DNA from: Lepidodermella squamata
Lineage: Eukaryota; Animalia; Gastrotricha
Assembly (NCBI GenBank): GCA_047495785.1
Contig: JBLDXI010000015.1
Span: 868,001-932,000, forward strand
DNA length: 64,000 bases
Direction: 5' to 3'
Part shown: positions 245 to 27,025 of the stretch, piece by piece
Position numbering within the stretch: the stretch's first letter is position 1
Layout: each line of letters opens with the position of its first letter
Translations under genes and position numbers: made by a program
Notes under the pieces: model-generated
What the model was told of the DNA's origin: nothing
Databases searched by the model: none
Seen by the model: only the letters and a program-made list of their open reading frames with translations

Positions 245-2746
245 TTTTTTAATGGTTAAGCTAGTAAGCAGTTTCGTCTGAATTGAGCTGAAAACGCGGG
301 CTGCACTCAATAATGGATAACATTTTTGCTAAAACTCATCGCTCACTACTCTTCCCGAAGATGTGGACTGAAAAAACCGAGTTTCGGTATACACACGAAA
401 GGCTTCGATGTCGTTAAACAAGTCCTATTCGACCCCATGCACTTGCTCTTCGAGGGCAATTTGCAGACCGAGAGAATTCTTCTCTCGTTTCGACTTTTCC
501 CCAGCAAATCACCAACCCGTATTTCTAAATCTTCGACACAAGAGCAATGATGTTATCTCGAGTTGAAACGAAGTACCGATCTAACTTGAACGAAGTACCG
601 GGTATCTCGCTTGTAGCAAGCCTGGAATCTCGCCCTTCATGCCTAAACAGTCGATGCCTAATTTGTGAGTGGTAGCCGTAGCTAATGGCAGACAAAGTTC
701 CAACTTCTGATTCTGAAAAGCAACAGTCTTTGTACCAGAGCGTCTTTTTCGGCGAAACAGGCTATATCGAAGTCGCAGTTTTCAACAATTCTTCGCGCTT
801 CGATCAACTCAAGACCAAATTGTTCACATTCCCGTTTTCGAAAATACTCATGTTATTTTTCGAACTTCAGCCTGGCCAATCTATATTTTGCTAATTTTAC
901 TGTACCGAGTTATCGGTTCCAAGTATCGATGTTACAAATCAGTGATTTTTCCTGATAACTAAAGTCTAAAACGCCGTTATTTAATCTATTTCTACCTATT
1001 TAATAGCACCAGGTAGCTAAAATACAAATTCCAGGTTCAAAATATCGATCCACAAGTTAGCATGTCGTAGTTTTATTTATATCGATTGCCGGCCGGCGCT
1101 ATAGGCACATATGAATGACATCGGAGCATGAAAATATATTGCCCCCATGCTATCTAGGGCTCGTAGCATTTATAAATTGAACATTATCATAGGCAGTTCA
1201 TAATTTCGAGTTTTATGTTATTATTTTATTTTTGTATTTTAGTTTTTGTCGATTTTTGTTGGCTTTTTGTGCGTTTTTGTAGAAAGGTAGAAAAGTCGAT
1301 CGAGGGTTCGGGCTCGTTGCGCAAATTGAGTAGGGCTGAAAATTATCGAAGGTGGTTAACGGCAATAATTAAGGGCTTACAGGCAGGGCTATTCCAGCTC
1401 ATCAGACACGGCTCAGGTTCCGAAAGGCTCAAGGCTCAAGGTCAGGCTCATGACGACTCAGGCTCAGGCTCAGGGCTCTGTAAGGCAAGGCAGAGATCAA
1501 TTCATTAAACGGTCAAGTTAGCGCTGGAACCTGCAAGCTCGAAGTGTTGGTGGTGCAAATACTTGCATCCATCTCTCAATAAATGTCTGCCTTCGTGTTG
1601 TACTACAAAAGGAACCACGCTGCGCTACCCGAAGATTAATTTGAAGTTCAAACCTTTCGTAAATACTTTGACATTTACGTAGAATTAGCTCTTTTTTCCC
1701 AGATTCGCGTCTTCACCTTCACTACTACCTCACCTCAAGCACTAACTAGGACAGATAATTGAAGGTATGAAAAGGCATATTATTTTTCATGTCACAAGAA
1801 GAAGTCCTAATCATTGTATTAGAATATTTCCCTTTTTCAAATTTTCTTCCGGGCTTGGGTAAGGACTCTTCTCTTACTGCGTGTCTCCTTCACGGATATG
1901 TAATTCGGTAACTCTGAACCGCGTTAGTTTATTGCTTCGATAAACTAGTTCCTGAATTCTTTTAATGAAGCCAATTTCCATTCAAAATAATCTTTTTGAA
2001 AATGAAAAAAGCAGATGATGGAGAAAATGAACTCCAAGTACTGCGTAGCTACAAGGTCATGTGCCCATCACATGATAACCATGATTCAATTTAATTTTCA
2101 ACTACGAGTCGCGAATTTTAAGTCGCAGCTTTACTAATTTCAAACCACACTGTATTTTGCTAATTTTACTGTACCGAGTTATCGGTTCCAAGTATCGATT
2201 TTACAAATCAGTGATTTTTCCCGATAACTAAAGTCTAAAAGGCCGTTATTTAATCTATTTCTACCTATTTAATAGCACCAGATAGCAAAAATCAAAGTTC
2301 AAGATTGAAAATATTGATCTGCGAATTAGCGCTGGAACCTGTAAGCCCGGAGAGTTGGTGGTGCAAATACTTGCTCCGATCTCCCGATTAATGCTTGCCT
2401 CCGTGTTATACTACAAAAGGAGCCACGCTGCGCTACCCGAAGATTTCAAGTGGCCACAAGCCACGTGGAAAATCAAAGCGCGAGTCACAAAGTTGACCCT
2501 GTGTCCAGTTCTGGGGCAAGTTCTCACGCGAAAAAACCGCGAACACGGGAAACGGCAAAAAAGAAGAGCCAAGAAGACACACGTGACGAACTCTCGCGGT
2601 GAGATGAGGCTCAGAATTAAAACCTTACAGGATTTACCGGATGAAACCCGTTAAAAACCGATGGTAACTGGTAACTCGTTCGGTAATTTTCGGCAATTAC
2701 CGTTTTGGCCTAGTTTTGGCAGTGTTTTTACTTCCATTGACAAGTG
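245..2746 (+). mobile_element. Degenerate CACTA/EnSpm (CMC)-like DNA transposon copy, internally deleted/duplicated
   Basis: ORF 326-550 carries [19 protein letters not shown], matching the D-x-MH-x3-EG motif of EnSpm-type transposases. The right end reads ...CCATTGACAAGTG (CACTTG on the - strand), with the same terminus at 23799. Homologous segments recur at ~13725-14810 and 17195-23799; ~885-1060 is duplicated at ~2150-2330. Left boundary approximate. Confidence 0.65.
1062..1513. mobile_element. 452-bp insertion with 9-bp direct repeat, containing GGCTCA repeats
   Basis: CAAGTTAGC at 1053-1061 and 1514-1522. The paralogous copy at ~14620 (CAAATTAGCGCTGG) lacks the insert. No TIR seen. Confidence 0.6.
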
Positions 2747-2904
2747 AAGAATTACAACCTTACAGAATTTCTGCTTGCTCGAGGGGTTCTGCGAGAGGCA
2801 TCGTTGAAAATCACAGATATTCCATGAAAATGACCTGATATACGGTTCAATTTGAGCCGAGAATGAGCTGCGTTTTCGTGATCGGCATGCATTTCCGGAA
2901 GTTA

Positions 2905-3531
2905 AGGCTGTTAAAGCAAGATAAGGCTGTCAGAATTGTCATGAATGCGCCGGATTGTGCCGACCCTTCTCCTCTCCGCGACGAGCTCAAATGGCTTGAC
3001 CTTCAGGGCAAGCGAAACGTGCACATTGCCACCTTAATGTACAGATGTCTTGCTGGTGACTCACCCGATGTTATAAAATCTATTTTTGTTCCTAATTCTC
3101 CATCTTCTACTCGTTCTTCGCGTCTCAGCTTCAAAATTCCTACTATGAGACTTGACTACGGCCAAGCCTCTCTTAGTTACGCAGGACCTCTCTTGTTTAA
3201 CAATTTACCACTCCACTTTCATTGTCCTCATCATCGCCCAGTCGATATTACTTCCTATACTAGCCTTCCTCCACGATGCGATTGCGGCTTCAAAATCTGT
3301 TACAATGCTCACTCTTGCCGACAACTTGTCTACAATTATCTGTTGACTAAACCTAAGCTCAAATCATATAAATGCTAAATTTTGTACATCTTTTGTTTTG
3401 TTATTATCAAACTTTGAAACGGATTGAAACATGACTCGAATTTTCTGCCACTTTTATACCACTTGAAACTTTTTGTTATCGTGCTCTCAACTTTGGGATT
3501 TATGCACTTAAATAATAAATAAATAAATAAA
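2905..3531 (+). mobile_element. 5'-truncated non-LTR retrotransposon (CR1/L2-clade) 3' end
   Basis: ORF 2863-3378 has the typical post-RT C-terminus (QDKAVRIVM...LKWLDL...LMYRCL...LSYAGPLLFNNLP), followed by a 3' UTR and a (TAAA)n tail at 3511-3531. Confidence 0.8.
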
Positions 3532-15500: not shown

Positions 15501-18500
15501 TTCATTTAGGCGAACACAAACCTGACAGAACAGCAGCCTGGACCGCAGCTCCATAGGCGACAGCTTCATCCGGATTGATCGACTGATTCAGCGTCTTGCC
15601 GCCCATAAAATCTTTCAACAACTTCTGAACCTTCGGAATTCGAGTCGAACCGCCCACCAGTACAACTTCATCGATACGCGATTTGTCGAGTTTAGCGTCA
15701 CGGATGGCCTGTTCGACCGGTTGCATCGTTCGCGCGAACAAGTCATTGCACAGTTCTTCGAAACGGGCTCGCGTTATTTTCGCATAGAAATCAACGCCTT
15801 CGTGCAACGAGTCGATTTCAAGGCTGGCTTCGGCCGAACTCGACAGCGCGCGCTTGGCCCGCTCGCAGGCGGTTCGAAGACGACGGATGGCTCGTAAATT
15901 GCCAGAAATGTCCTAAAAAATGGGTAAAACGTCATTTCGCCCTCAGAGCAAATTTCATATAATTTCAGATGATAAAAGAAAATTAAAAAAGAAAATTCAT
16001 AAATTTTGTGATTTTCCAATATATTGGCTGGCCTTTAATCTACTATTTTGTCATGTTATTTATCTCATTTTATTAAATTATTGAAAAAGATACGGTTTAT
16101 ATGAGGAAACACTTCAAGTCCGGTAATTTCTGTTTAGCCCACGGGCTGTGCGATTGTTTGTCCTATTTCAAATAATAAACTCACACTTACTCATAGCGTG
16201 ATCAGCTGAGCTATCGATAAGAAGGTAATATTTTCCAATTGATTGTATTGATCTGTGGCTCATTTCCAAGTGACCAAAAAGAGGATTTGCCAGCCCTTCG
16301 AAATGTAGCCGGTTACCTAAGCAGAGTTGTAGGCCTTTCAGGTTCGAATCCAACACCAGAGGACTTTACTGATTTATACAAGACTATTCCCCATGCAGAA
16401 GTATACCGCTTAGTAAGATTAATGTCATCCACAGCTGTCCACACACTGACAGATCCAGATTTTCGAAACCAGCTATATGAGGAATTTCCTGTCTTCAACA
16501 CAGATGTGATCGATCGCATTTTAAATAGTATTACCGCTCGTTGCACGATTCAGCATTATAAGAATGAAGCTATAGAAAAAGCTAGTTTCGCCTCCTTCGC
16601 GACCACAAACTCAGCGAGATTAATTTTTCGATTCCTCCGAAATTTTATTCGTTTTACTCAGAGATGAAAAGTCCGGTCCACGACGGCTGTCTCTCTAAAT
16701 TTATTACTATTCCAAACTATAGTACGCCCCACCTCTGTGGCAGAACGGAAGTCGTATCGGTCCCGCTACTTGATCAATCGGATAACGGTCGAATTTAATT
16801 TATTTGGAGTGCATCAATTATAGAAATTCGCAACGATTTATACTTGAGTTGGCTGAGCTGCTTCTGTCTGCCACCGCGCTTCTAATCACCGGCCTGGCCC
16901 TCATCATCGGCGCCATCCATCACCTGCGTATCGATTGTTTTCGAATTCTACACATCAGCGCGTCGCATTTTAGCTTAAAAACTTGAGGGCAACCATCGAT
17001 ATCTGTCTGTCAAGCACTATATAGTGCTATTTGTAATTATACCTAAAGAATTTTTTTAACTTTTTGTTCCGGTTCTACTTTGGACTTGCTTTGCCTCAAT
17101 AACAGCAGTGCTATTTGCCTCTGTCAGTTTTCTTCAATTCGCAAGTTTTCTCCAAGTTTGAGTTTTGCCAAATTTTGTTTTAGTGACTTCAGTAACTTAA
17201 ACGAAGTACCGGGGACAAGCTTGTAGCAAGCCTGAGTTCTCGCCCTCACATGCCTGAACAGTGGGCAGCGATTGTGAGCGAGAGCCACAGTAAATGGCAG
17301 ACGAAGTTCCAACATCTGATTCTGACACGCAACAAGGTTTCCGGCCCAATCAACTTAGTGGAACCAGTGAATCCACAATTTTTCTATTGGCTGGTATTTT
17401 TAGTTACAGGCGCGCTCCTTAATGCTGTTGGTGGGTTTAAAAGGCACGCGAATTTTCCATTTTTTTCAGTTTTATCTCACATTTTTCATCTGAACATTTC
17501 AACTCACATATTTTTTAATTTTTAATTAATTTTTTTAATTTATAATAATGCTCGTCCGCATGACCGTCGTCGAGAGCGAAGGGTGGCACAAACTTGTTGT
17601 CAGCGAAATCCCATCTTTCGACGAACTACGATTCTCTGCGATGGAGGAACTTCATCTGGGTGAAGTTTACGGCTTCAACTATACGGATGCTAATGGTGAA
17701 AAAGTAATATTTTTTTATTTTTATGAATCATGCCTTGTATTGAGATTGCTTTCTAGGCCTGCTTCGCCACCGAGAAAAGCCTCAAAATTGCGCTTGCCGA
17801 ATTGGGAGGAAAGCTCGACAAGCTGTGGGTGTTGCCGGCGGCTCCGGAAAGCCGATCAAGGGCTGGGTCTGTGAGCTCTTGCTCCAGTCGCCGATCAGCG
17901 TTCAAGTCAGTGGCGTTCTCATCACCGACGGCAAGTATTTCCTCGATCAGCGTTTCGCTTCCGAAAACTGCCTCGAAGCCAGATTCGACGCTCAAAGCGG
18001 CTTCTTCAACCATCACCCAGACGCCGAAGAAGCACAAGTCGAGGCGCTCGAAAGTCCGGAAAGGCGGCCGGCCTTACGCTCCGTACGACACCCCGGAGAA
18101 AGAAAGTATCAAAGCCCTCCTCGATTTCGGGCAAGAAAACGATTTTCCCGAAACAATCGAATATAGCCCGCACATCAAGAGCTATAAAGCCGCTCAAGAC
18201 CCCGATTTTATGGCTGTTTTCGGATCTCGCTCCAAGACCGCGGTGATGGACAAAATCAACGCGGAATGGAAGAAACTCATGGACACTGATACAGATTCCG
18301 AATAACTTTTCCACATATCTCATACTTTTGTTTTAATTCATTTTTTCAATTTTAAACCTGTTTTATGAGGCCAATAACATGAAGTTTTGATAAAATAAAG
18401 CCTTATCAATTTTTATTTTGACTTCTTAGTTCAATAATACCGTTCAAAAAATTAAAAACTTGAAAATTTGACTTTACACCCTATTTTCACTTTTCTCAAC

Positions 18501-21500
18501 AATCAGGGTTGTGATCGAAGAAAAAGTGTAAATTTGCAATTTTTATTACGCAACATTGACCTTACCGATAAGAGCCAAATTTTACCCAGCGTTAGTCATA
18601 CCCAAGAGCTATCTGTGATAGAAAAGGTTTGATTTTTTCTTTCGATCACAACCCTGGTATGCCATATATTATAGCCTGCTTCCAGCAATCATGCTTTTCA
18701 AAAATTAAACTAAAAGGGCCGATGTAATAGGTATGTAATATTTTTTAGGCTTAGCGTCTCATTAAATTTTGCCGGATTTGATTGCGGAAAATTATTCAAT
18801 GTACCTAATTTCGATGATAGCACAATTTTCGAACTAAACTTCGTGAAAAAAAGAAAGAAATCTGAAAATCCCGTGTTAATTGTTGATTGTTGGCGAAGAT
18901 TAATTTCGAAAATTAATGTCCAAACACGTTATTTTTGTGTATAACTGACTTCAGTGAAAATTTAATAATTTCAGCAGCCATTGAGCCTATTCGATGCATG
19001 AGAAAGGTTAATTTTAAGATTTTGAGTCCTAAGAAATGTCTTTCTTGATTATAACACATCTTATGAAGAATAGATCTCGGTATTTTTATTTATTATAACT
19101 ACTATCACCTAATTTGACGAGGATTATAGAAAATCATTCGAGATTAAAGTAAAACGTAAACACGAAGTTGATTATTCCGATTACAACATTAAACATAGAA
19201 CGCGTTCGTCGTCAATCGCGAAACTGGCTGTCAGGAATTCAAGTTTCAAGTCCAGCCCTGCTCAGGATCAATTGGTATCGATTGGCGGAAAGCATGTTCA
19301 CGCTCTGCTCGAGTAAGACTGATCCCTAATCGGCATTTTCGTACCACATGCTCTTCAAGCACGCTGATTTGGAATAGCACATCGCAAAAAGGACAGAATA
19401 AAAATATTCTGATTTTTGCGATATCATAAAAATATCGGTAAAATCTTCCTCGCTTGTATAAAAAAACTGAATTATCCATTCTACAAAAAATGCCAGCATT
19501 GAAGATAACTGATGAACAGGAATTTTATTGAAATTTTAAAACAAGAAAAAAGTTTAAAACAGGGTCAATTTTCAAATCAGAAAGTTCGACGATTGTTATT
19601 TCCGACGCATGTAAAACATTTTCAACCACAGCTGGCCAAGATCATCATCCCTGGAAAAGAGGTGGAATAAATACATTTTCACCAAATTACATATATTTAC
19701 AAGCAGTGCCAAGAAGCCGTCATCTGAAAATTTAAGCAGATCACAAATTTCCCATTTTCAACATCTTGCTTATCCAAAGTAAGGGATTTCAAAAATTCTC
19801 GGCATGTTATTTTGATCGGCCTCTTCAGCGACCCAAACCTTGACCAAAAATGACATTTTTTGTTGAATACCTTGGCATTTATTCTTACTTGCCGAAAGCG
19901 CCGCGGAACTGCCCAATGAAGCATGGCACATTCAACGTAAATTTACGCGGAAAGAAATGGGACCGCTTTGTTACCCGTTTCGATCTCAAAAGATGTTGAA
20001 TGGCAGCACCTACTACTCTGCCGAGCGATCGCGCGTGATTAGCTCTAGACAGATTAATCAATGAAACGTGGAAATGAATCGATTAAAAAAACGTACTTCG
20101 TGATTTTACGGCGAGAGCTCATATCAATGTAGTATTTCGATTTTTTCGATAAATATTATTTTTTTTTAAATTTTAGCACAATCCTATTATGAAAATAAAG
20201 CGCAATAAAAACGACTAGCCTAAGATAAGAAGCTCTTATTTTTAGGAAATAACGTAGACTTTTAATAATTTAGCCCAGCAAAATGGCCCCGGTTCGGGCA
20301 TTGAACTGCCCGGTTCGACATCCACCCCATTTACGATTGGTAAATTTATTCTTTAATTTTTCAAGTGACATACATATCTGATTTGCCAGCTCTGCGCGAC
20401 TTGTAAAGCGGCAGCTAAAGCCGATGGGCGACGTGGGCCGAAATCTGTGCGTTTGTTGTTATGATTTATATAATTCAGCCCTTAAATGATAGCGATTATC
20501 AGTCTAATCCTTCTGGCTTGCCTTACCATCAAATTCAAACAAAATCGGGGCGAAAAAAACGCATCGAAACGGTTTTAGCTGAGCATCTTAGTTCACTAAC
20601 TAACAGCGAATTGTGGCGAGAGAAGATTGGCGATAAAAAGGTCGCGGAATGCGGTTTATTCATTCGTTTCGAAGGTTCGAAAAATGTCGTAAGGGTTGAG
20701 ATGCCCCTAAAATCATCTGAAGAGCGCGATGAAATGCAAACAAAAGAAGCTGAGAGGTTATTTACTACTCATTATTTTATCTTCGCTTGCAATGCATTTT
20801 TTAGAGCTGTCAAGTTGCGGATGAGGCACGCGGTCTCAGGGCGGACATTTTTTAAACTCGCTAGGGCCCAAAATCCCAACCATCCTTCGCGCAGAAGACT
20901 GGTCAAAGCTCGCCGACGGCTTGCTAATTTTTTCCATATCACGACCCATGAGGAGCTTGAACACCGTGAGTATTTTTTTTAATTTGCCTCAAATATGATA
21001 CTTTTAAAATAAAAAAATCAGGTAAACATAGAAGCGACGATTCGCCCAGAGAAAAAGGTGCCACGATTTCCCCGAAAGAAATTTTCGAGCACTGGGCAAA
21101 TGCTAATATGCTGAAGCGTTACCCCGAAATTAATAAAATTAGGGTTCAAATCGACGGCATGGGGTCTCGATCAAATGTTGCCCAAGGCATTGTTTCATTT
21201 ATTATTTGTCTTGAAGACAGGAAGAAGACAGCTGGAATTGATAATGAGTACCAAGTTGGTTTATACCAGGGCGAAGAAGATTCTGAGAATCTTCGACATT
21301 ATTTTGCCGAAGTCTGTAGAGAGCTTGAGCAAATGTGTCGTGAAACCGTGACAGATCGGCATAAAGGGCGAAAATACAAATTTTCGTTGATTTTATGTTG
21401 CGACTATATGATGCTAACAAAGGTAAAAGCACTGTATAAGCTGCGAAATTCGAGTTTTCTGCCAACATTGCAATTTTAAGATTTTGGCCTGCGGCTCTCC

Positions 21501-24500
21501 AGGTAGCGACCACTCATGTGTCTTCTGTGTCGGCAATGTTGGGAACGGAGCTGGGAATGAGGGCCCTGCTCGCGACTTTGCCGAGCAATTTCGACTTCGC
21601 AGCAATGAGCAAGGCTGGTCTCTAGAATATTTGCCGCTTTTCGATCTGCCTCGCGAAATGCTAACAATTCTGCCATGCTGCCTACATATGTTTTCGGCCA
21701 TAGCGCTTTCAATCTTGAATTCGGTAAGCTATGCAATAGGTTGGGAAGCAATGAAAATAGGCTAAATAAATTATTGCAGCTGTTAACATTTATGCTGAGT
21801 AACAAGCTGAAAACGGCTTTTAGCAATGCGAAAGGGTTTTTAGAGCGTTCTTTGTTCAATTTGCGCGTGGATCCGTCGAACGACCCCAATGCAACAAAGC
21901 TGAAGCGGTACACACATAGTGGTATCGTCAAGGTTCGAATTTGATTCAAAATTAATGTTATCGCTGATTTAAAATTTTCAAGGCCCTGCGCTGCTTGCAT
22001 GAGAATACTACGCTGATGACTTTTTTGGAAGAAAACTGGCAAAGCAAATTGCTCGAGTCCAGATTTACTCTCGATATATTTGTCAGATTTTTGGATGAAA
22101 ATAATGTCTCTCATCGTCGCAAATTACAGTCACCTGAAGCGAAAATTAAGAAGTGCTTGCAATTGCGCATGCCGGAGGCGGAAGAAGTGAGTTTCGTAAA
22201 CAGAAATCTGGCCTTTTACACACATGGATTTTACTATAAGCTTTCGTCATCATACTAATTGTTTTACAGGTTATTGCGGGAGTGCTGTCTAAGTTCCGAG
22301 AATTCGATATTCTCATTGCGAGAACTATCGAGTTACTCGATCTCGTCGAATCTAATGAGGTTCCCGAGAGCGATTTTGCGTTTCGCGAGTTCGAATTTTA
22401 TTTTCAAGCTGCGATAGGAAATGTAACGCCCTATTCCCATGGTAAAGCTTTTTTGACCGATGGGTGATTTGCTAAAGGTTTAATATCTTAGTCTTGGCCA
22501 GCCATGTTTATTCCCTGATGAGGGCAGGCTACGACCTTCGAGCTTTGAGCGGCATCTCAATTGAGTTGCGTATCAAAGCTCTCCGAAAGCTTTTATCTAG
22601 CACCGTTTTTTTCGGTGATCCGGTTTGCCGGCAACTAATGGAAAACCTGGTGATTTCAGCAAATAATGATGAGTCCCCCTGCTACAGCTCAGAAGAAAGT
22701 GATGGCGAATTGAGTGAGATAGAAGAACTGGAATTTTCTTGAAGAACTAGCGTGGTTGCAATCGGTAAAAATGAGTTAAAATGGAAATGTGACGTGAAAG
22801 AACCGAAATTAACAAGAAGTAAAATATTTAATGAAACATTTATTGAAACGTGTGATCACGGGAAAAAAAATAAAATGGCGCGTGGCGCGCTTTTTGATCC
22901 AACCAATCAGCTTTTAAACCAGCCAGCCAATCAGGAAATTGTGGATTCACTGGTTCCACTAAGAATGATTGTACCAAAGTGTCATTTTCGACGCATCAGG
23001 CTACATAAAAGTGGCAGCTTTCAACAATTCTTCGCGCTTCGATCAGCTGTTACCGAGATCAAGACCGAATTTATTAAATTCCCATTTTCAAAAATACTCG
23101 TGTGGATTTTCGAAATTTACGTCCTCCTTGAAATCTAGATAATTCCGCTACCAAGCCCGGCCAATCTATATTCAGCTCATTTTGCTCTATCGGCGGTCAT
23201 TTTACGAGTTGCACTTCCGTTTGCAGAGCCGATAGGTATATCGGTTCCAAGTACCGATTTTACAAATCAGTGATTTTTCCCGATAACTGAAATCTAAAAG
23301 GCCGTTATTGAATCGATTTCTACCTAATTAATATCACCAGGTAGCTAAAATAAAAATTCCAGGTTCAAAATATCGATCTACAAATCAGCGCAGGAACCTG
23401 TAAGCCCGAAGTGTTGGTGGTGCAAATACTTGCATCCATCTCTCAATAAATGCTTGCCTTCGTGTTTATACTACAAAAGCAGCCACACTACTAGAATATT
23501 TCAAGTGGCCGCAAGCCACGTCGAAAATAAAAGCGAGTCACAAAATTGACCCTGTGTCTAGTTCTGGGTCAAGTCCTGGCGCGAAGAAATCGCGAACATA
23601 GGCAACGGCGAAAAAGAAGAGCCAAGAAGACCCGCGTGACGAACTTTCGCGGTGAGATGAGGCTCAGAATTAAAACCTTACAGAATATACCTGATGAAAC
23701 CCGTTAAAAACCGACGGTAACTGGTAACTCGTTCGGTAATTTTCGGCAATTCCCGTTTTGGCCTAGTTTTGGCCGTGTTTTTACTTCCATTGACAAGTGA
23801 CATACCTTTGTAGGTTATGGCTTATGTCATGGCAGTTGGAATGGCTACTGGCCATGAGAATATCCTCTTAAATTCAGGGATCGATTTTGCCGAAAACTCA
23901 AAAATTTGATTTTTCTCAAAACTACAAAACGCTTCTACGCTTCTAGATTCTATGGTGATCATTTACTGCGACGGCTGCGAACGAAAACCACTCAACTACG
24001 TTTGGGACGAGAGAACTGGCGGTATCTGGCTGACAATTGCTGACAATTACAGAGGTCAAAATAAGAGCAAAAAAATAGAAGCGATAATTCTCGAAATGGC
24101 CCCATAAAAAGTGCAAAACTGAATTATTTCCAAGTCGGTCATACCCAAAACGAAGGTGAGTTGGTTCACAGCGTGATCGGCTGAGTTATCGATAAGATGG
24201 ACCTACGACTTAGCAATAGGTATATCGATCTGGCTAGTTCCAACATCGAATACAAAATCCGCGAGACAAAATTTGCGGTTCTTCCAAGACTTTAATCGTT
24301 CTACTCAGAGTTGAAAAGTTCGAACTGAATCCGGGGCTGTCTATCTGAACCCAAAACGACTAACTAGCTACTATAACGAGTCAAATTTCCTTCAAAAAAA
24401 TGAAAAATTATTTACTCCTGTTTTGGAGAATCATCTTTAAAACTCGAAATCTAGCTTTTAGATTTTACGAATTGTGGCCAGAATGCAATTTTTGAAAATA

Positions 24501-27025
24501 AACGGGATAATTGAGGAACCAGCGAGTAAATATGGTAAAACTTTAAAGCGCTATAATTGTATTCATAACGAGTCCGAAGGTTGGAAAAACTTGTAAAACA
24601 TAGCTTTAAAATTGTAATTAAATTATTTCGAAATTTCTCAAAAATTAATGTTTTTTAATTTTCACTTTCAATCTAAAGTTTAAAAAGCCAACCTTTTTGT
24701 ATTTGCGCTTGAACTCTTCAATGAAATGATTCACCATTCGATTATCGAAATCTTCGCCGCCCAAGTGCGTATCGCCCGACGTCGATCGCACCTCGAACAC
24801 GCCCTCGTCGATCGACAAAATCGAAACATCAAACGTACCGCCGCCAAGGTCGAAAATCAGCACATTCTGCTCCTTTTTCATCCGCTTATCCAGGCCGTAA
24901 GCCAACGCCGCCGCCGTCGGCTCGTTGATAATGCGCAGGACGTTCAAACCCGAAATCGTGCCAGCATCTTTCGTCGCCTGGCGCTGCGAGTCGTTGAAGT
25001 AGGCCGGAACTGTGATGACGGCATCGCGAATTTTACGGCCCAGGTACGCCTCGGCGATCTCTTTCATTTTAACGAGAACCATCGAGCTGATTTCTTCGGG
25101 CGCGAAACGACGCCGCTCGCCTTTGTACTCGACTTCAACTTTCGGCTTGCCACCTTCATTCACCACTTTAAACGGCCAGTGTTTCCTAGAAAAAAGAAAT
25201 TAGCAACAAAATTAGTAAATTTGAAATAAAAAAGTTTAAGAAATCTTAATTTCATATTTTTGTATCAGAGCTGGAAAACCTGCAGGATTTCCTACGCACC
25301 GATTTTGTTATTGCCCACTAAAAAACCGTTGCCCTCAATTTTTGACTGTTTTCTAAGCCAAAATGTCCTATTTTTCTCAAAATTTCCTACGCACCTGGTG
25401 CGCCCTTTCCGCAAGTTTTCCAGCTCTGTTTTGTATATTCTTGCGTAAATTTAATGCTTGAGATAGATTGCCGAGCCAACTCGAGCCCATTTGTAAATTA
25501 ATCGATAAAATTCCACATATAAATAATGTCCCATTTTCTTTTTTATTGCGACTCTCATGTCGCATCATTAGGTAGCTCGCGTGCTTCGCCAGAAAAATCG
25601 GAAATAATTTATTTGCTGATTATTTGCTGCGTCTGAATTTTGCATATTCAACAATCTTTACGTCTAAAATTTCCTTGTCAAAAGATTTCGACCAAACTAC
25701 ATTGCTTGACCTGCCATTTGAAGAGCGCCTGAAGTTCGTGATTCTTTGTCTGTTGATCGATACTAATGCCTTACCCCGCTGTCCTCACATTACTCGGCAA
25801 CAACGCACATTTCTTAGTCTCGGCAACCAATAAAGGTGGGGACTCAATGGCTGTTTTCGCGACAACGCCTGACCTCATCAGGTACACGAGTTTGGTACCA
25901 AAAGAAAGCTCGTGAAATTCTACATCGATCGTATAATTTTTGCCGAGATTTGTTGAGAAATCTTGGGAAATTATTTTGGACGATATTTCCCATCTTACAG
26001 TGATCGGCCGCCTTTTCCTGCCAGCTATAAACGACCGGAAAGTGACGCTACAACCTCCCGGAACACTCCGAACGTCATTCCGAATTGTCTAGACGACTTC
26101 GACACTTGGGTTGAATTTGTCAGACTAATATTTGATGCACTATACAGGAGAGACGCTCAGTAAATTCAGCAACGACGGCCTCGTCGTCCACATTGGCACG
26201 TCAGCAACCTCAGTCTTAACGCAAAACATAGCCCCAGCCCAGCTACCCGCCGCCAACTTGAAAAATGCCACCCTGGGCAGCAACAGTAACAACAATCGGT
26301 TAACCGTAAATGCCTATCAATTTTTTTCATCTAGCCATTATTTTCAAATTGATTCTCATCACAAACGGAATGAGTACCGAGTTTCAAGCCGAAATTATTG
26401 CTGCTCCGCGATAACATTCTGTGAAAAAGCTCATTTTCATGAGTAACATAGCTTCGGCGAAGAGCCTCTAAAACTGTGTTGCATATACCTACCCGTTTGA
26501 ATCAATTGAGGGAAAAACAAGACGAGAAATCGAACGAAATAAAACTTTTATAACAACTTTGCGAGAATGCTTTGCCGTTGCATGGATACCAAATGATCGA
26601 TATAACACATATCGAGATCTTGATTACTAGCAAAGAGTATTAATTTCCTTATTGCAATAATTAAAATCGCAATTTTACTGATTTTTTAATGTTTAAAATT
26701 AAAAATTCTTACATGTCATCTTGTACGGTTTTGTCGTCGAATCGCCGGCCAATCAAGCGTTTCGCGTCGAAAACCGTGTTTTCCGGATTCAACGCCACTT
26801 GGTTCTTCGCCGCATCGCCAATCAGGCGTTCGGTATCGGTAAACGCTACGTAACTCGGCGTCGTTCGATTGCCTTGATCATTTGCAATAATTTCAACCTT
26901 GCCATTCTGGTAAACGCCGACACAAGAATAAGTCGTTCCTATAAAAGGGTAAGATCAGACAAAAGTTAACGAAAAGAATCACAGCACTCACCAAGATCGA
27001 TACCAATCGCGTTTGAAGTCGCCAT
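12522..27025 (-). CDS. HSP70: Cytosolic heat shock protein 70, 642 aa, 6 exons: 27025-26992, 26938-26713, 25185-24693, 15912-15522, 13666-13478, 13117-12522
   Basis: Spliced at GT-AG sites into one 1929-nt frame: [48 protein letters not shown]-terminal GPKIEEVD. Confidence 0.97.
13725..14810 (+). mobile_element. Second degenerate copy of the CACTA/EnSpm-like element (Hsp70 intron 4); provides the empty site
   Basis: Colinear similarity to 245-1636, including [14 protein letters not shown]. It contains the uninterrupted ...CCGATCAATGATTGCACC... site that is split at 17353/22964. Confidence 0.7.
17548..18305 (+). CDS. Transposon accessory protein, 234 aa (exons 17548-17703, 17757-18305): PB1/ubiquitin-like N-domain, Ser-rich linker, basic NLS-like patch, Myb/SANT-like C-domain
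   Basis: A 53-nt GT-AG intron joins two ORFs in frame. N-terminus VRMTVV...PSFDELR...[23 protein letters not shown] fits the PB1 layout; then [12 protein letters not shown] and [17 protein letters not shown]. Domain names are pattern-based inference. Confidence 0.7.
18504..18656. mobile_element. 153-bp MITE inside the transposon
   Basis: CAGGGTTGTGATCGAAGAAAAA ... TTTTTTCTTTCGATCACAACCCTG; no TSD found. Confidence 0.65.
19246..19479 (-). CDS. 77-aa ORF/exon with a C2HC zinc finger (alternative last exon or separate cistron of the transposon's minus-strand gene)
   Basis: [21 protein letters not shown] (C-x2-C-x11-H-x4-C), preceded by the acceptor-like TTTTTTGTAG|A ATG. Confidence 0.5.
   Translation of the reverse strand: MDNSVFLYKRGRFYRYFYDIAKIRIFLFCPFCDVLFQISVLEEHVVRKCRLGISLTRAEREHAFRQSIPIDPEQGWT
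19596..20122 (-). CDS. Basic 124-aa protein of unknown function, 4 exons (20122-20097, 20044-19889, 19838-19701, 19650-19596), divergent from the transposase
   Basis: Three GT-AG introns of 52, 50 and 50 nt, all phase 2, give a stop-free frame [20 protein letters not shown]...[11 protein letters not shown]. Confidence 0.6.
20283..22742 (+). CDS. RAG1/Transib-like DDE transposase, ~658 aa, 10 exons (20283-20339, 20390-20446, 20479-20756, 20805-20965, 21022-21422, 21481-21723, 21780-21932, 21983-22186, 22270-22441, 22492-22742)
   Basis: The spliced frame is stop-free. Ordered motifs [31 protein letters not shown] and [11 protein letters not shown] correspond to RAG1 DGMG (D600), GYDEK (D708), CTLC, DALH, HKTLAH and SEGNE (E962). 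N-terminal [16 protein letters not shown] Zn knuckle. The first two exons (one intron is only 32 nt) are less certain. Confidence 0.85.

Follow-up and report, generated by a model that had tools for sequence, protein, structure and literature searches.

A probably autonomous, sequence-divergent transposon of the CMC/Transib clade within an Hsp70 intron of Lepidodermella squamata

The described transposons closest to the subject of this study, a 5,610-bp element at 17354–22963 of a 64,000-nt window from Lepidodermella squamata (contig JBLDXI010000015.1, positions 868,001–932,000 of the forward strand; all coordinates are those of this window), are those of the CMC/Transib (CMCT) clade. This clade is marked by a conserved set of two cysteines and three histidines, by CA..TG ends in most cases and by target site duplications (TSDs) of 2–5 bp; ESTA, which has a TA duplication, matches RAG1 by HHpred, and the TSD of PlavakaA is 2 bp long (PMC12730594). 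The C(2)C, LH and H(4)H motifs have been termed characteristic of Chapaev, whose hallmarks include 3–4-bp TSDs and CAC...GTG ends (PMC4079192). In the classification of Kapitonov and Koonin, the Transib superfamily includes Chapaev and Chapaev3 as clades next to RAG1, and an N-terminal Chapa zinc-finger domain is described (PMC4411706). Majorek et al. treated DUF1280 as the Pfam counterpart of Chapaev transposases and DUF1258 as that of Mirage, with DUF1280 and RAG1 in one clade (PMC3985635). According to a 2026 preprint, CMC elements have 2–4-bp TSDs, and members of the Transib lineage can have non-C termini and a TSD of 3 bp or TA, so that TSD length and terminal inverted repeat (TIR) sequence are both labile (10.64898/2026.08.26.747230). 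A 2-bp TSD has also been reported for one CACTA-type family (PMC6004678).

We consider it likely that the L. squamata element is an apparently intact, autonomous cut-and-paste transposon of the CMCT clade, closest to its Chapaev/Transib side. Its transposase gene lies on the plus strand at 20283–22742, where a script-checked gene model gives nine exons (20283–20339, 20390–20446, 20503–20965, 21022–21422, 21481–21723, 21780–21932, 21983–22186, 22270–22441 and 22492–22742) and a product of 666 amino acids. All eight introns are of the GT-AG type, measure 50–83 nt and are phase-compatible, and the product is stop-free. The initial annotation had described a stop-free spliced protein of about 658 amino acids with nine junctions; the stop-free splicing stands, and the figures are now 666 amino acids and eight junctions. 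To compare this model with chance, we used dynamic programming to find the longest ATG-to-stop spliced path with at most eight GT-AG introns of 50–83 nt. For the transposase region this longest open reading frame (ORF) was 2,043 nt, whereas 25 random sequences matched in dinucleotide composition gave 618–1,311 nt. Junctions 4, 6 and 8 were also spanned gap-free by uninterrupted ORFs of homologues from environmental contigs (P0003/P0008, L009 and L001), with alignments reading CDY..L.K|ILACG at junction 4 and YSH|V|LASH at junction 8. In a separate observation on raw reads, 91% of sampled 31-mers from 20400–22800 were found in a 2024 sequencing run and 16% in a 2015 run that was flagged 'RNA?' and came from a differently coded organism, the latter share not being interpretable.

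The ordered motifs listed by the initial annotation were all located in the 666-amino-acid protein: QIDGMG (D237), LILCCD (D320), C339-x2-C342, LH395, H583-x4-H588 and LSGISIE (E608), preceded by an N-terminal C9-x3-H13...C21-x2-C24 knuckle and by the basic segments GRRGPK and SGRKKR. The N-terminal 200 residues are basic overall (41 K/R versus 20 D/E), and none of the tools applied assigned a fold to them. Exon 4 (21022–21422, plus strand) encodes the pre-RNase H region and strands β1–β4 of the RNase H domain, with D237 on β1 and D320 just past β4, while exon 5 (21481–21723) carries C339xxC342 and LH395, and exons 8 and 9 (22270–22742) carry H583xxxxH588, with the junction codon between the two histidines, followed by E608. 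The eight residues D237, D320, C339, C342, H395, H583, H588 and E608 are all kept in the relatives L001 and L009. The spacings D320–C339 (19 residues) and H588–E608 (20 residues) are identical to those of mouse RAG1, where D708 and C727 are 19 and H942 and E962 are 20 residues apart (PMC4914335), and the DGMG motif is identical as well; in contrast, D237 and D320 are separated by 83 residues versus 108 in RAG1. Because the literature gives this motif list as the signature of Chapaev and of the CMCT clade as a whole, it is not specific to RAG or Transib. Thus, of the RAG1/Transib kinship proposed in the initial annotation, the layout and the predicted fold of exon 4 are retained, and the specificity for RAG and Transib is not.

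The fold of this catalytic region was assessed with an AlphaFold2 model of window exon 4 (133 amino acids; predicted local distance difference test score, pLDDT, 80.6; predicted template modelling score, pTM, 0.73). The model runs in the order helix, β1 with D237, β2, β3, α1, β4 and then D320, which is the RNase H topology. The initial annotation had suggested a structural comparison with RAG1 and Transib, and the predicted module does superpose on them and on BbRAGL, at Z 7.7–9.2 against 5.1 for the next fold. In a Foldseek search of the PDB, the top 47 matches were exclusively RAG1, HzTransib and BbRAGL. VIA-align placed model residues 2–133 on mouse RAG1 545–714 at Z 9.1–9.2, with a root-mean-square deviation of 3.1–3.5 Å over 127–129 residues, and aligned the model with HzTransib 82–230 at Z 8.4–8.7 and with BbRAGL at Z 7.7; in an exhaustive pass over 48,161 representative PDB chains, a glucokinase came next (Z 5.1), and the P element transposase scored 4.9. 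The ends of the aligned range (133 to 714) pair D320 of the protein (residue D127 of the model) with RAG1 D708, and the length bookkeeping is compatible with a pairing of D237 with D600. On the exon 4 model, the earlier assignment of the acidic residues to an RNase H DDE site would therefore hold for D320 and be compatible for D237. Among AlphaFold models of Swiss-Prot proteins, eight RAG1 proteins ranked first and noise followed. A model of the homologue P0008 (pLDDT 71) gave the same outcome against the PDB, and no CMC transposase structure was among the PDB matches of the models.

Comparison with predicted structures broadened this picture. In an Atlas shape search, DUF1280-bearing and RAG1 clusters were equally near to the window model (TM 0.73–0.80), and the 99 nearest Atlas models included both of these and no Transposase_21 cluster. 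For the P0008 model, Transposase_21 (EnSpm) clusters were as near as RAG1 clusters (TM 0.61–0.64). Matches among AlphaFold DB clusters were uncharacterised eukaryotic proteins, one labelled CxC1 and one DUF4218. Given that DUF1280, RAG1 and Transposase_21 clusters are alike near, we infer that the fold is that of the whole CMC/Transib group, and the predicted fold of the window's own sequence leans to the RAG1/DUF1280 side.

At the sequence level, relatives were few. An exhaustive phmmer search of 1.84 billion cluster representatives with exon 4 returned six proteins at E <1e-3, the best at 3e-11, all of them short, unnamed and from ENA or Logan assemblies; two profile searches gained P0008 and P0011 as the sole new members, and exact look-ups of the window ORFs gave no match. 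On the relatives' contigs, the same gene is split by short introns (L001) or by one intron (L009), which indicates that these relatives come from eukaryotes. Pfam and NCBIfam searches of all pieces showed no RAG1/Transib link and no Pfam family at threshold, no RAG1 Pfam model matched any piece of the window protein or its relatives, and RAG1 and Transib PDB chains were matched neither by phmmer with single sequences nor by hmmsearch with the family profile. The sole family signal to recur across sequence searches was DUF1280, found in window exon 4 and, within the same profile region and below threshold, in homologue P0001 (E 0.037). Transposase_21 gave one faint match, also in P0001 (E 0.17), and the Mirage family DUF1258 gave none in Pfam searches of the window pieces and relatives. 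Because no Pfam threshold was reached and the 1.8 billion representatives held just six weak relatives, the element belongs to a lineage that is divergent at the sequence level. In an Atlas feature search with the homologous L009 piece, the C-terminal module had many unnamed animal clusters as neighbours, with echinoderm, arthropod and mollusc labels and scores of 0.96–0.97, and the sole named family among them was RAG1_ZnH2. Given these many unnamed animal clusters, the transposase family is probably widespread yet unannotated.

Some further features of the related contigs were recorded. L009 has three short minus-strand ORFs after its transposase, one with a faint homeodomain match (E 0.013), and L010 is listed beside L009 and L011 for the related metagenomic element. 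L001, a 7.1-kb environmental contig, has a 644-aa uninterrupted ORF (1233–3167, minus strand) head-to-head upstream of the related transposase; it lacks a Pfam match and may represent a partner gene or else a host gene in the neighbourhood.

The element is bounded by 41-nt TIRs. The left TIR (17354–17394, plus strand) begins CTTAGTGG and includes the CCAAT-box-like ATTGGCTGG, and the right TIR (22923–22963, minus strand) repeats its outer 28 nt exactly. Over the full 41 nt the arms are 90% complementary, differing at 4 of 41 positions. Within the window, the outer 28-mer occurred at these two sites only, with up to 3 mismatches allowed and a chance expectation of 0.00, and both this search and local BLAST of the element against the window showed a single copy of the element; metagenome scans using the TIR and exon 4 gave no match. 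The exact termini can be read in three ways. In the simplest reading, which is that of the initial annotation, the ends are CTTAG...CTAAG, the TIR is perfect from base 1 and the candidate TSD is AA (17352–17353, with its partner at 22964–22965). In the second, the ends lie 3–4 nt outward, at 17351 and 22967, and read CAA...ATG, with an AT duplication (17349–17350 and 22968–22969) central in a CAATTG palindrome; this agrees with the CA..TG rule of the clade, yet requires an indel between the two tips. In the third, the ends are CAATCA...TGATTG and a duplication is absent. The element is thus flanked by a 2-bp direct repeat, AA or AT, under the first two readings, and because this is a single insertion with a chance match of 1/16, a 2-bp TSD is not established. 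The host DNA abutting the TIRs (17345–17353 and 22964–22971) is itself an inverted pair, CAATCA / TGATTG, which implies either a longer true TIR with an indel or a palindromic target site.

Among the related contigs, only L009 had a plausible TIR pair: its element (264–3511) appears to be bounded by a 17-nt inverted repeat whose copies start CATTATAAC and are each flanked by ATG, and contig L011, from a different sample, starts exactly at this terminus (CATTATAAC). These sequences hint at CA(T) ends and a footprint of 3 bp in the related elements. CCAAT-box-like motifs are present in both TIRs of the L. squamata element, as CCAGCCAATAG (17380–17392) and CCAGCCAATCAG (22925–22937), with an extra GATTGGTTGG at the right (22895–22905), and inward of the TIRs both ends have GGTTTAAAAG, GCGCGC and CCATTTT...TTTT blocks in common. 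These CCAAT-like and inner blocks could be end-embedded promoters or transposase-binding sites.

Besides the transposase, the element has a probable accessory gene, ORF1 (17548–18305, plus strand), with exons at 17548–17703 and 17757–18305, a 53-nt GT-AG intron in phase and a 234-aa product that has a serine-rich middle and a basic stretch. Its spliced length of 711 nt exceeds the longest value in 200 random sequences (696 nt; median 306 nt), although the GC-richer stretch in which it lies is open in other frames too, and the minus strand yields 522 nt. ORF1 is probably a gene, judging from its length, and had no Pfam match, no homologue and no Atlas neighbour (best score 0.75). The initial annotation had called it a PB1/Myb-like protein, a label for which we found no support from Pfam, Atlas or homologues; the PB1-like part straddles the intron and was not searched as one protein. 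In the two-protein EnSpm system, a single transcript is alternatively spliced to yield the proteins, the termini are CACTA and the TSD measures 3 bp. The L. squamata element resembles EnSpm/CACTA, with its TnpA and TnpD, in combining a CMC-clade transposase with a second, non-catalytic gene within the TIRs, and differs from it in that ORF1 has no detectable similarity to anything and CACTA termini are absent. Within the element's ORFs, Pfam searches revealed no RAG2-like or kelch ORF, nor any other Pfam domain.

Two further partners had been proposed, a basic protein and a zinc finger, both in the interval 18306–20282. Here the best spliced ORFs, considering both strands, were 375–549 nt versus 291–801 nt in random sequences, and we rejected both genes because they fall within the random range; coding in this interval is unsupported. 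Of the proposed partner set, this leaves ORF1. A C2HC finger-like ORF at 19246–19479 had faint C2HC zinc-finger Pfam matches only (E 0.02–0.06). The non-coding middle also contains a 153-bp unit (18504–18656) with a 22-nt inverted repeat (91%) starting CAGGGTTGTGATCG and CA...TG ends; a clear TSD was not seen and the window has no other copy. This unit may be a nested miniature inverted-repeat transposable element or another structured element.

Set beside the named groups of the clade, the element has the ordered catalytic and 2C/3H residues of CMCT transposases together with the RAG1/Transib-type pre-RNase H and RNase H fold predicted for exon 4, and its termini depart from CA...TG if the ends are CTTAG...CTAAG and fit if they lie 3–4 nt outward, for which an indel is needed. 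It resembles Chapaev and Chapaev3 in its C(2)C, LH and H(4)H motifs, in the recurring DUF1280 signal and in the nearness of DUF1280-bearing models, and is unlike them in having a 2-bp flank match and a CTTAG (or CAA/CAT) start rather than a 3–4-bp TSD (TWA in Chapaev3) and CAC...GTG termini, in scoring below the DUF1280 threshold, in showing no evident Chapa-type finger and in carrying the extra ORF1. With Transib, RAG1 and the RAG1L of ProtoRAG it shares, in addition to DGMG and the two spacings, a pre-RNase H and RNase H module for which these proteins are the unique best solved-structure match, and a C-terminal module whose only named neighbour is RAG1_ZnH2; it is unlike them in lacking sequence-level similarity in the core, a 5-bp TSD, a CACAATG/CACAGTG-like terminal heptamer and a RAG2-like kelch partner. 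ESTA, PlavakaA/B and the Transib-lineage Oriex, compared by description only, are similar in their RAG1-like remote-homology matches, their 2C and 3H set and their 2-bp duplications (PMC12730594; 10.64898/2026.08.26.747230), whereas the fungal ESTA and Plavaka and the insect families have TA or other defined TSDs and ends that start with TGT, CATCA or G.

Several observations weigh against placing the element as an intact member of this clade on its Chapaev/Transib side. The DUF1280 match in exon 4 (E 7.7e-4) scores 19.6 bits, below the Pfam cut-off of 25 bits, and a Chapa-type complex zinc finger is not evident at the N-terminus, where just the short C-x3-H...C-x2-C knuckle is visible. The simplest end reading starts with neither CAC nor CA, and under that reading the flanking 3-mers (CAA versus AAT), 4-mers and 5-mers (ATCAA versus AATGA) all differ, so that the canonical footprints of Chapaev, EnSpm and Transib fail. 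The predicted structure covers exon 4, and E608 is encoded by exons 8 and 9, beyond the model. The clade assignment itself draws on motifs, fold and sub-threshold profile matches, and activity and TSD are both inferred from one insertion. We nevertheless judge the element to be probably an autonomous, sequence-divergent member of a known clade.

Both the unbroken reading frame and the exact match of the termini would fit an element that is young and autonomous. The element could instead be an immobile relic or a recently immobilised insertion, in which the frame stayed intact and transposition was lost, for example through silencing, a lost factor or end defects. The 4 differences between the TIRs, the indel that would separate the two ends if the terminus lies 3–4 nt farther out, and the single copy in 64 kb are all consistent with such a history; however, a 666-aa frame that is stop-free over eight introns, with all catalytic and zinc residues retained, and a terminal 28 nt that is identical at both ends make it rather unlikely. 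The statement of the initial annotation that the element is still mobile is not supported as stated, intactness being its sole ground.

A tentative proposal, and one that we doubt, is that the element and its few metagenomic relatives make up an undescribed, active CMC/Transib lineage outside Chapaev, Mirage, EnSpm, Transib, ESTA, Plavaka and Lanisha, which would combine RAG1-exact zinc-site spacing with different ends, a 2-bp stagger and its own ORF1. If so, the RAG1/Transib core would gain a further branch close to its root. We find it unlikely that the element represents an undescribed RAG-related lineage of superfamily rank, sister to Transib/RAG, still mobile and with its own ends, 2-bp footprint and new partner set. 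This would accord with the absence of a Pfam family at threshold, with six weak matches that are all unnamed metagenome fragments, with RAG1/Transib as the unique best PDB fold, with the non-canonical ends and with an ORF1 that has no relatives. However, all of the diagnostic motifs belong to the published CMCT/Chapaev signature (PMC12730594; PMC4079192), the sole family signals are DUF1280 and Transposase_21, models of the EnSpm and DUF1280 types lie no farther away in structure than RAG1 does, and of the three partners proposed, two do not exceed chance. The initial annotation had also taken the different ends as a sign of a new lineage, but 2-bp TSDs and variable termini are already described in the clade (PMC12730594; 10.64898/2026.08.26.747230), so unusual ends alone do not define one. 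Finally, a Mirage- or EnSpm-type CMC element rather than one from the Chapaev/Transib side is unlikely: a 2-bp flanking repeat would fall within the CMC range of 2–4 bp (10.64898/2026.08.26.747230) and has a precedent in the CACTA-type family (PMC6004678), Transposase_21 appears once in the P0001 search and among the structural neighbours of the P0008 model, and the second gene recalls the two-protein EnSpm system, but Pfam membership in DUF1258 or Transposase_21 was not found (zero matches and one faint match), the 99 Atlas models nearest to the window model include DUF1280 and RAG1 and no Transposase_21 cluster, the C-terminal module has no named neighbour other than RAG1_ZnH2, and CACTA termini are absent.

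For an autonomous CMCT element closest to the Chapaev/Transib side, the parts described here suggest a plausible transposition cycle. The basic N-terminal 200 residues, with their CHCC knuckle, would bind the TIRs, and the DDE site would nick and excise the element, probably with hairpin formation on the flanking DNA, the route that Transib and RAG take. By analogy with RAG1 E962, E608, 20 residues past the H(4)H pair, would complete the active site, and four Cys/His residues would form a ZnB-type site. A 2-bp stagger would mark reinsertion, the two TIRs may act as promoters through their CCAAT-like boxes, and ORF1 would be a lineage-specific accessory protein.

Judged from its sequence features, the element probably belongs, as a functional and autonomous member, to the transposon clade that gave rise to RAG1; its family is barely represented in protein databases and captured by no Pfam model. 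It can be used in transposable element annotation of this genome and as an extra outgroup or ingroup for reconstructions of the RAG1/Transib/Chapaev core. The current picture of the clade is unchanged, as common motifs, variable TSD length and variable termini were already documented for it.

The insertion site of the element is a host Hsp70 intron on the minus strand (15913–24692; 8,780 nt), as proposed in the initial annotation, which had reported a TIR-bounded 5.6-kb element inside such an intron: the 41-nt TIRs lie within a gap that has HSP70 exons and a continuous peptide on either side. The minus-strand exon 24694–25166 matches Pfam HSP70 profile positions 93–243 (E 5e-79), and the exon 15505–15912 matches positions 245–377 (E 2e-51). 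The Hsp70 peptide is continuous over the gap (KRKYKK|...), which has a GT donor and a T-rich AG acceptor; given this uninterrupted peptide, 15913–24692 is a single intron. The element is oriented antisense to Hsp70. At 8.78 kb, the host intron contrasts in length with the element's own transposase introns of 50–83 nt, and about 3.2 kb of it lies outside the element (15913–17353 and 22964–24692). This non-element part contains a 142-aa ORF (16239–16667, plus strand) without a Pfam match, which is possibly other transposon debris.

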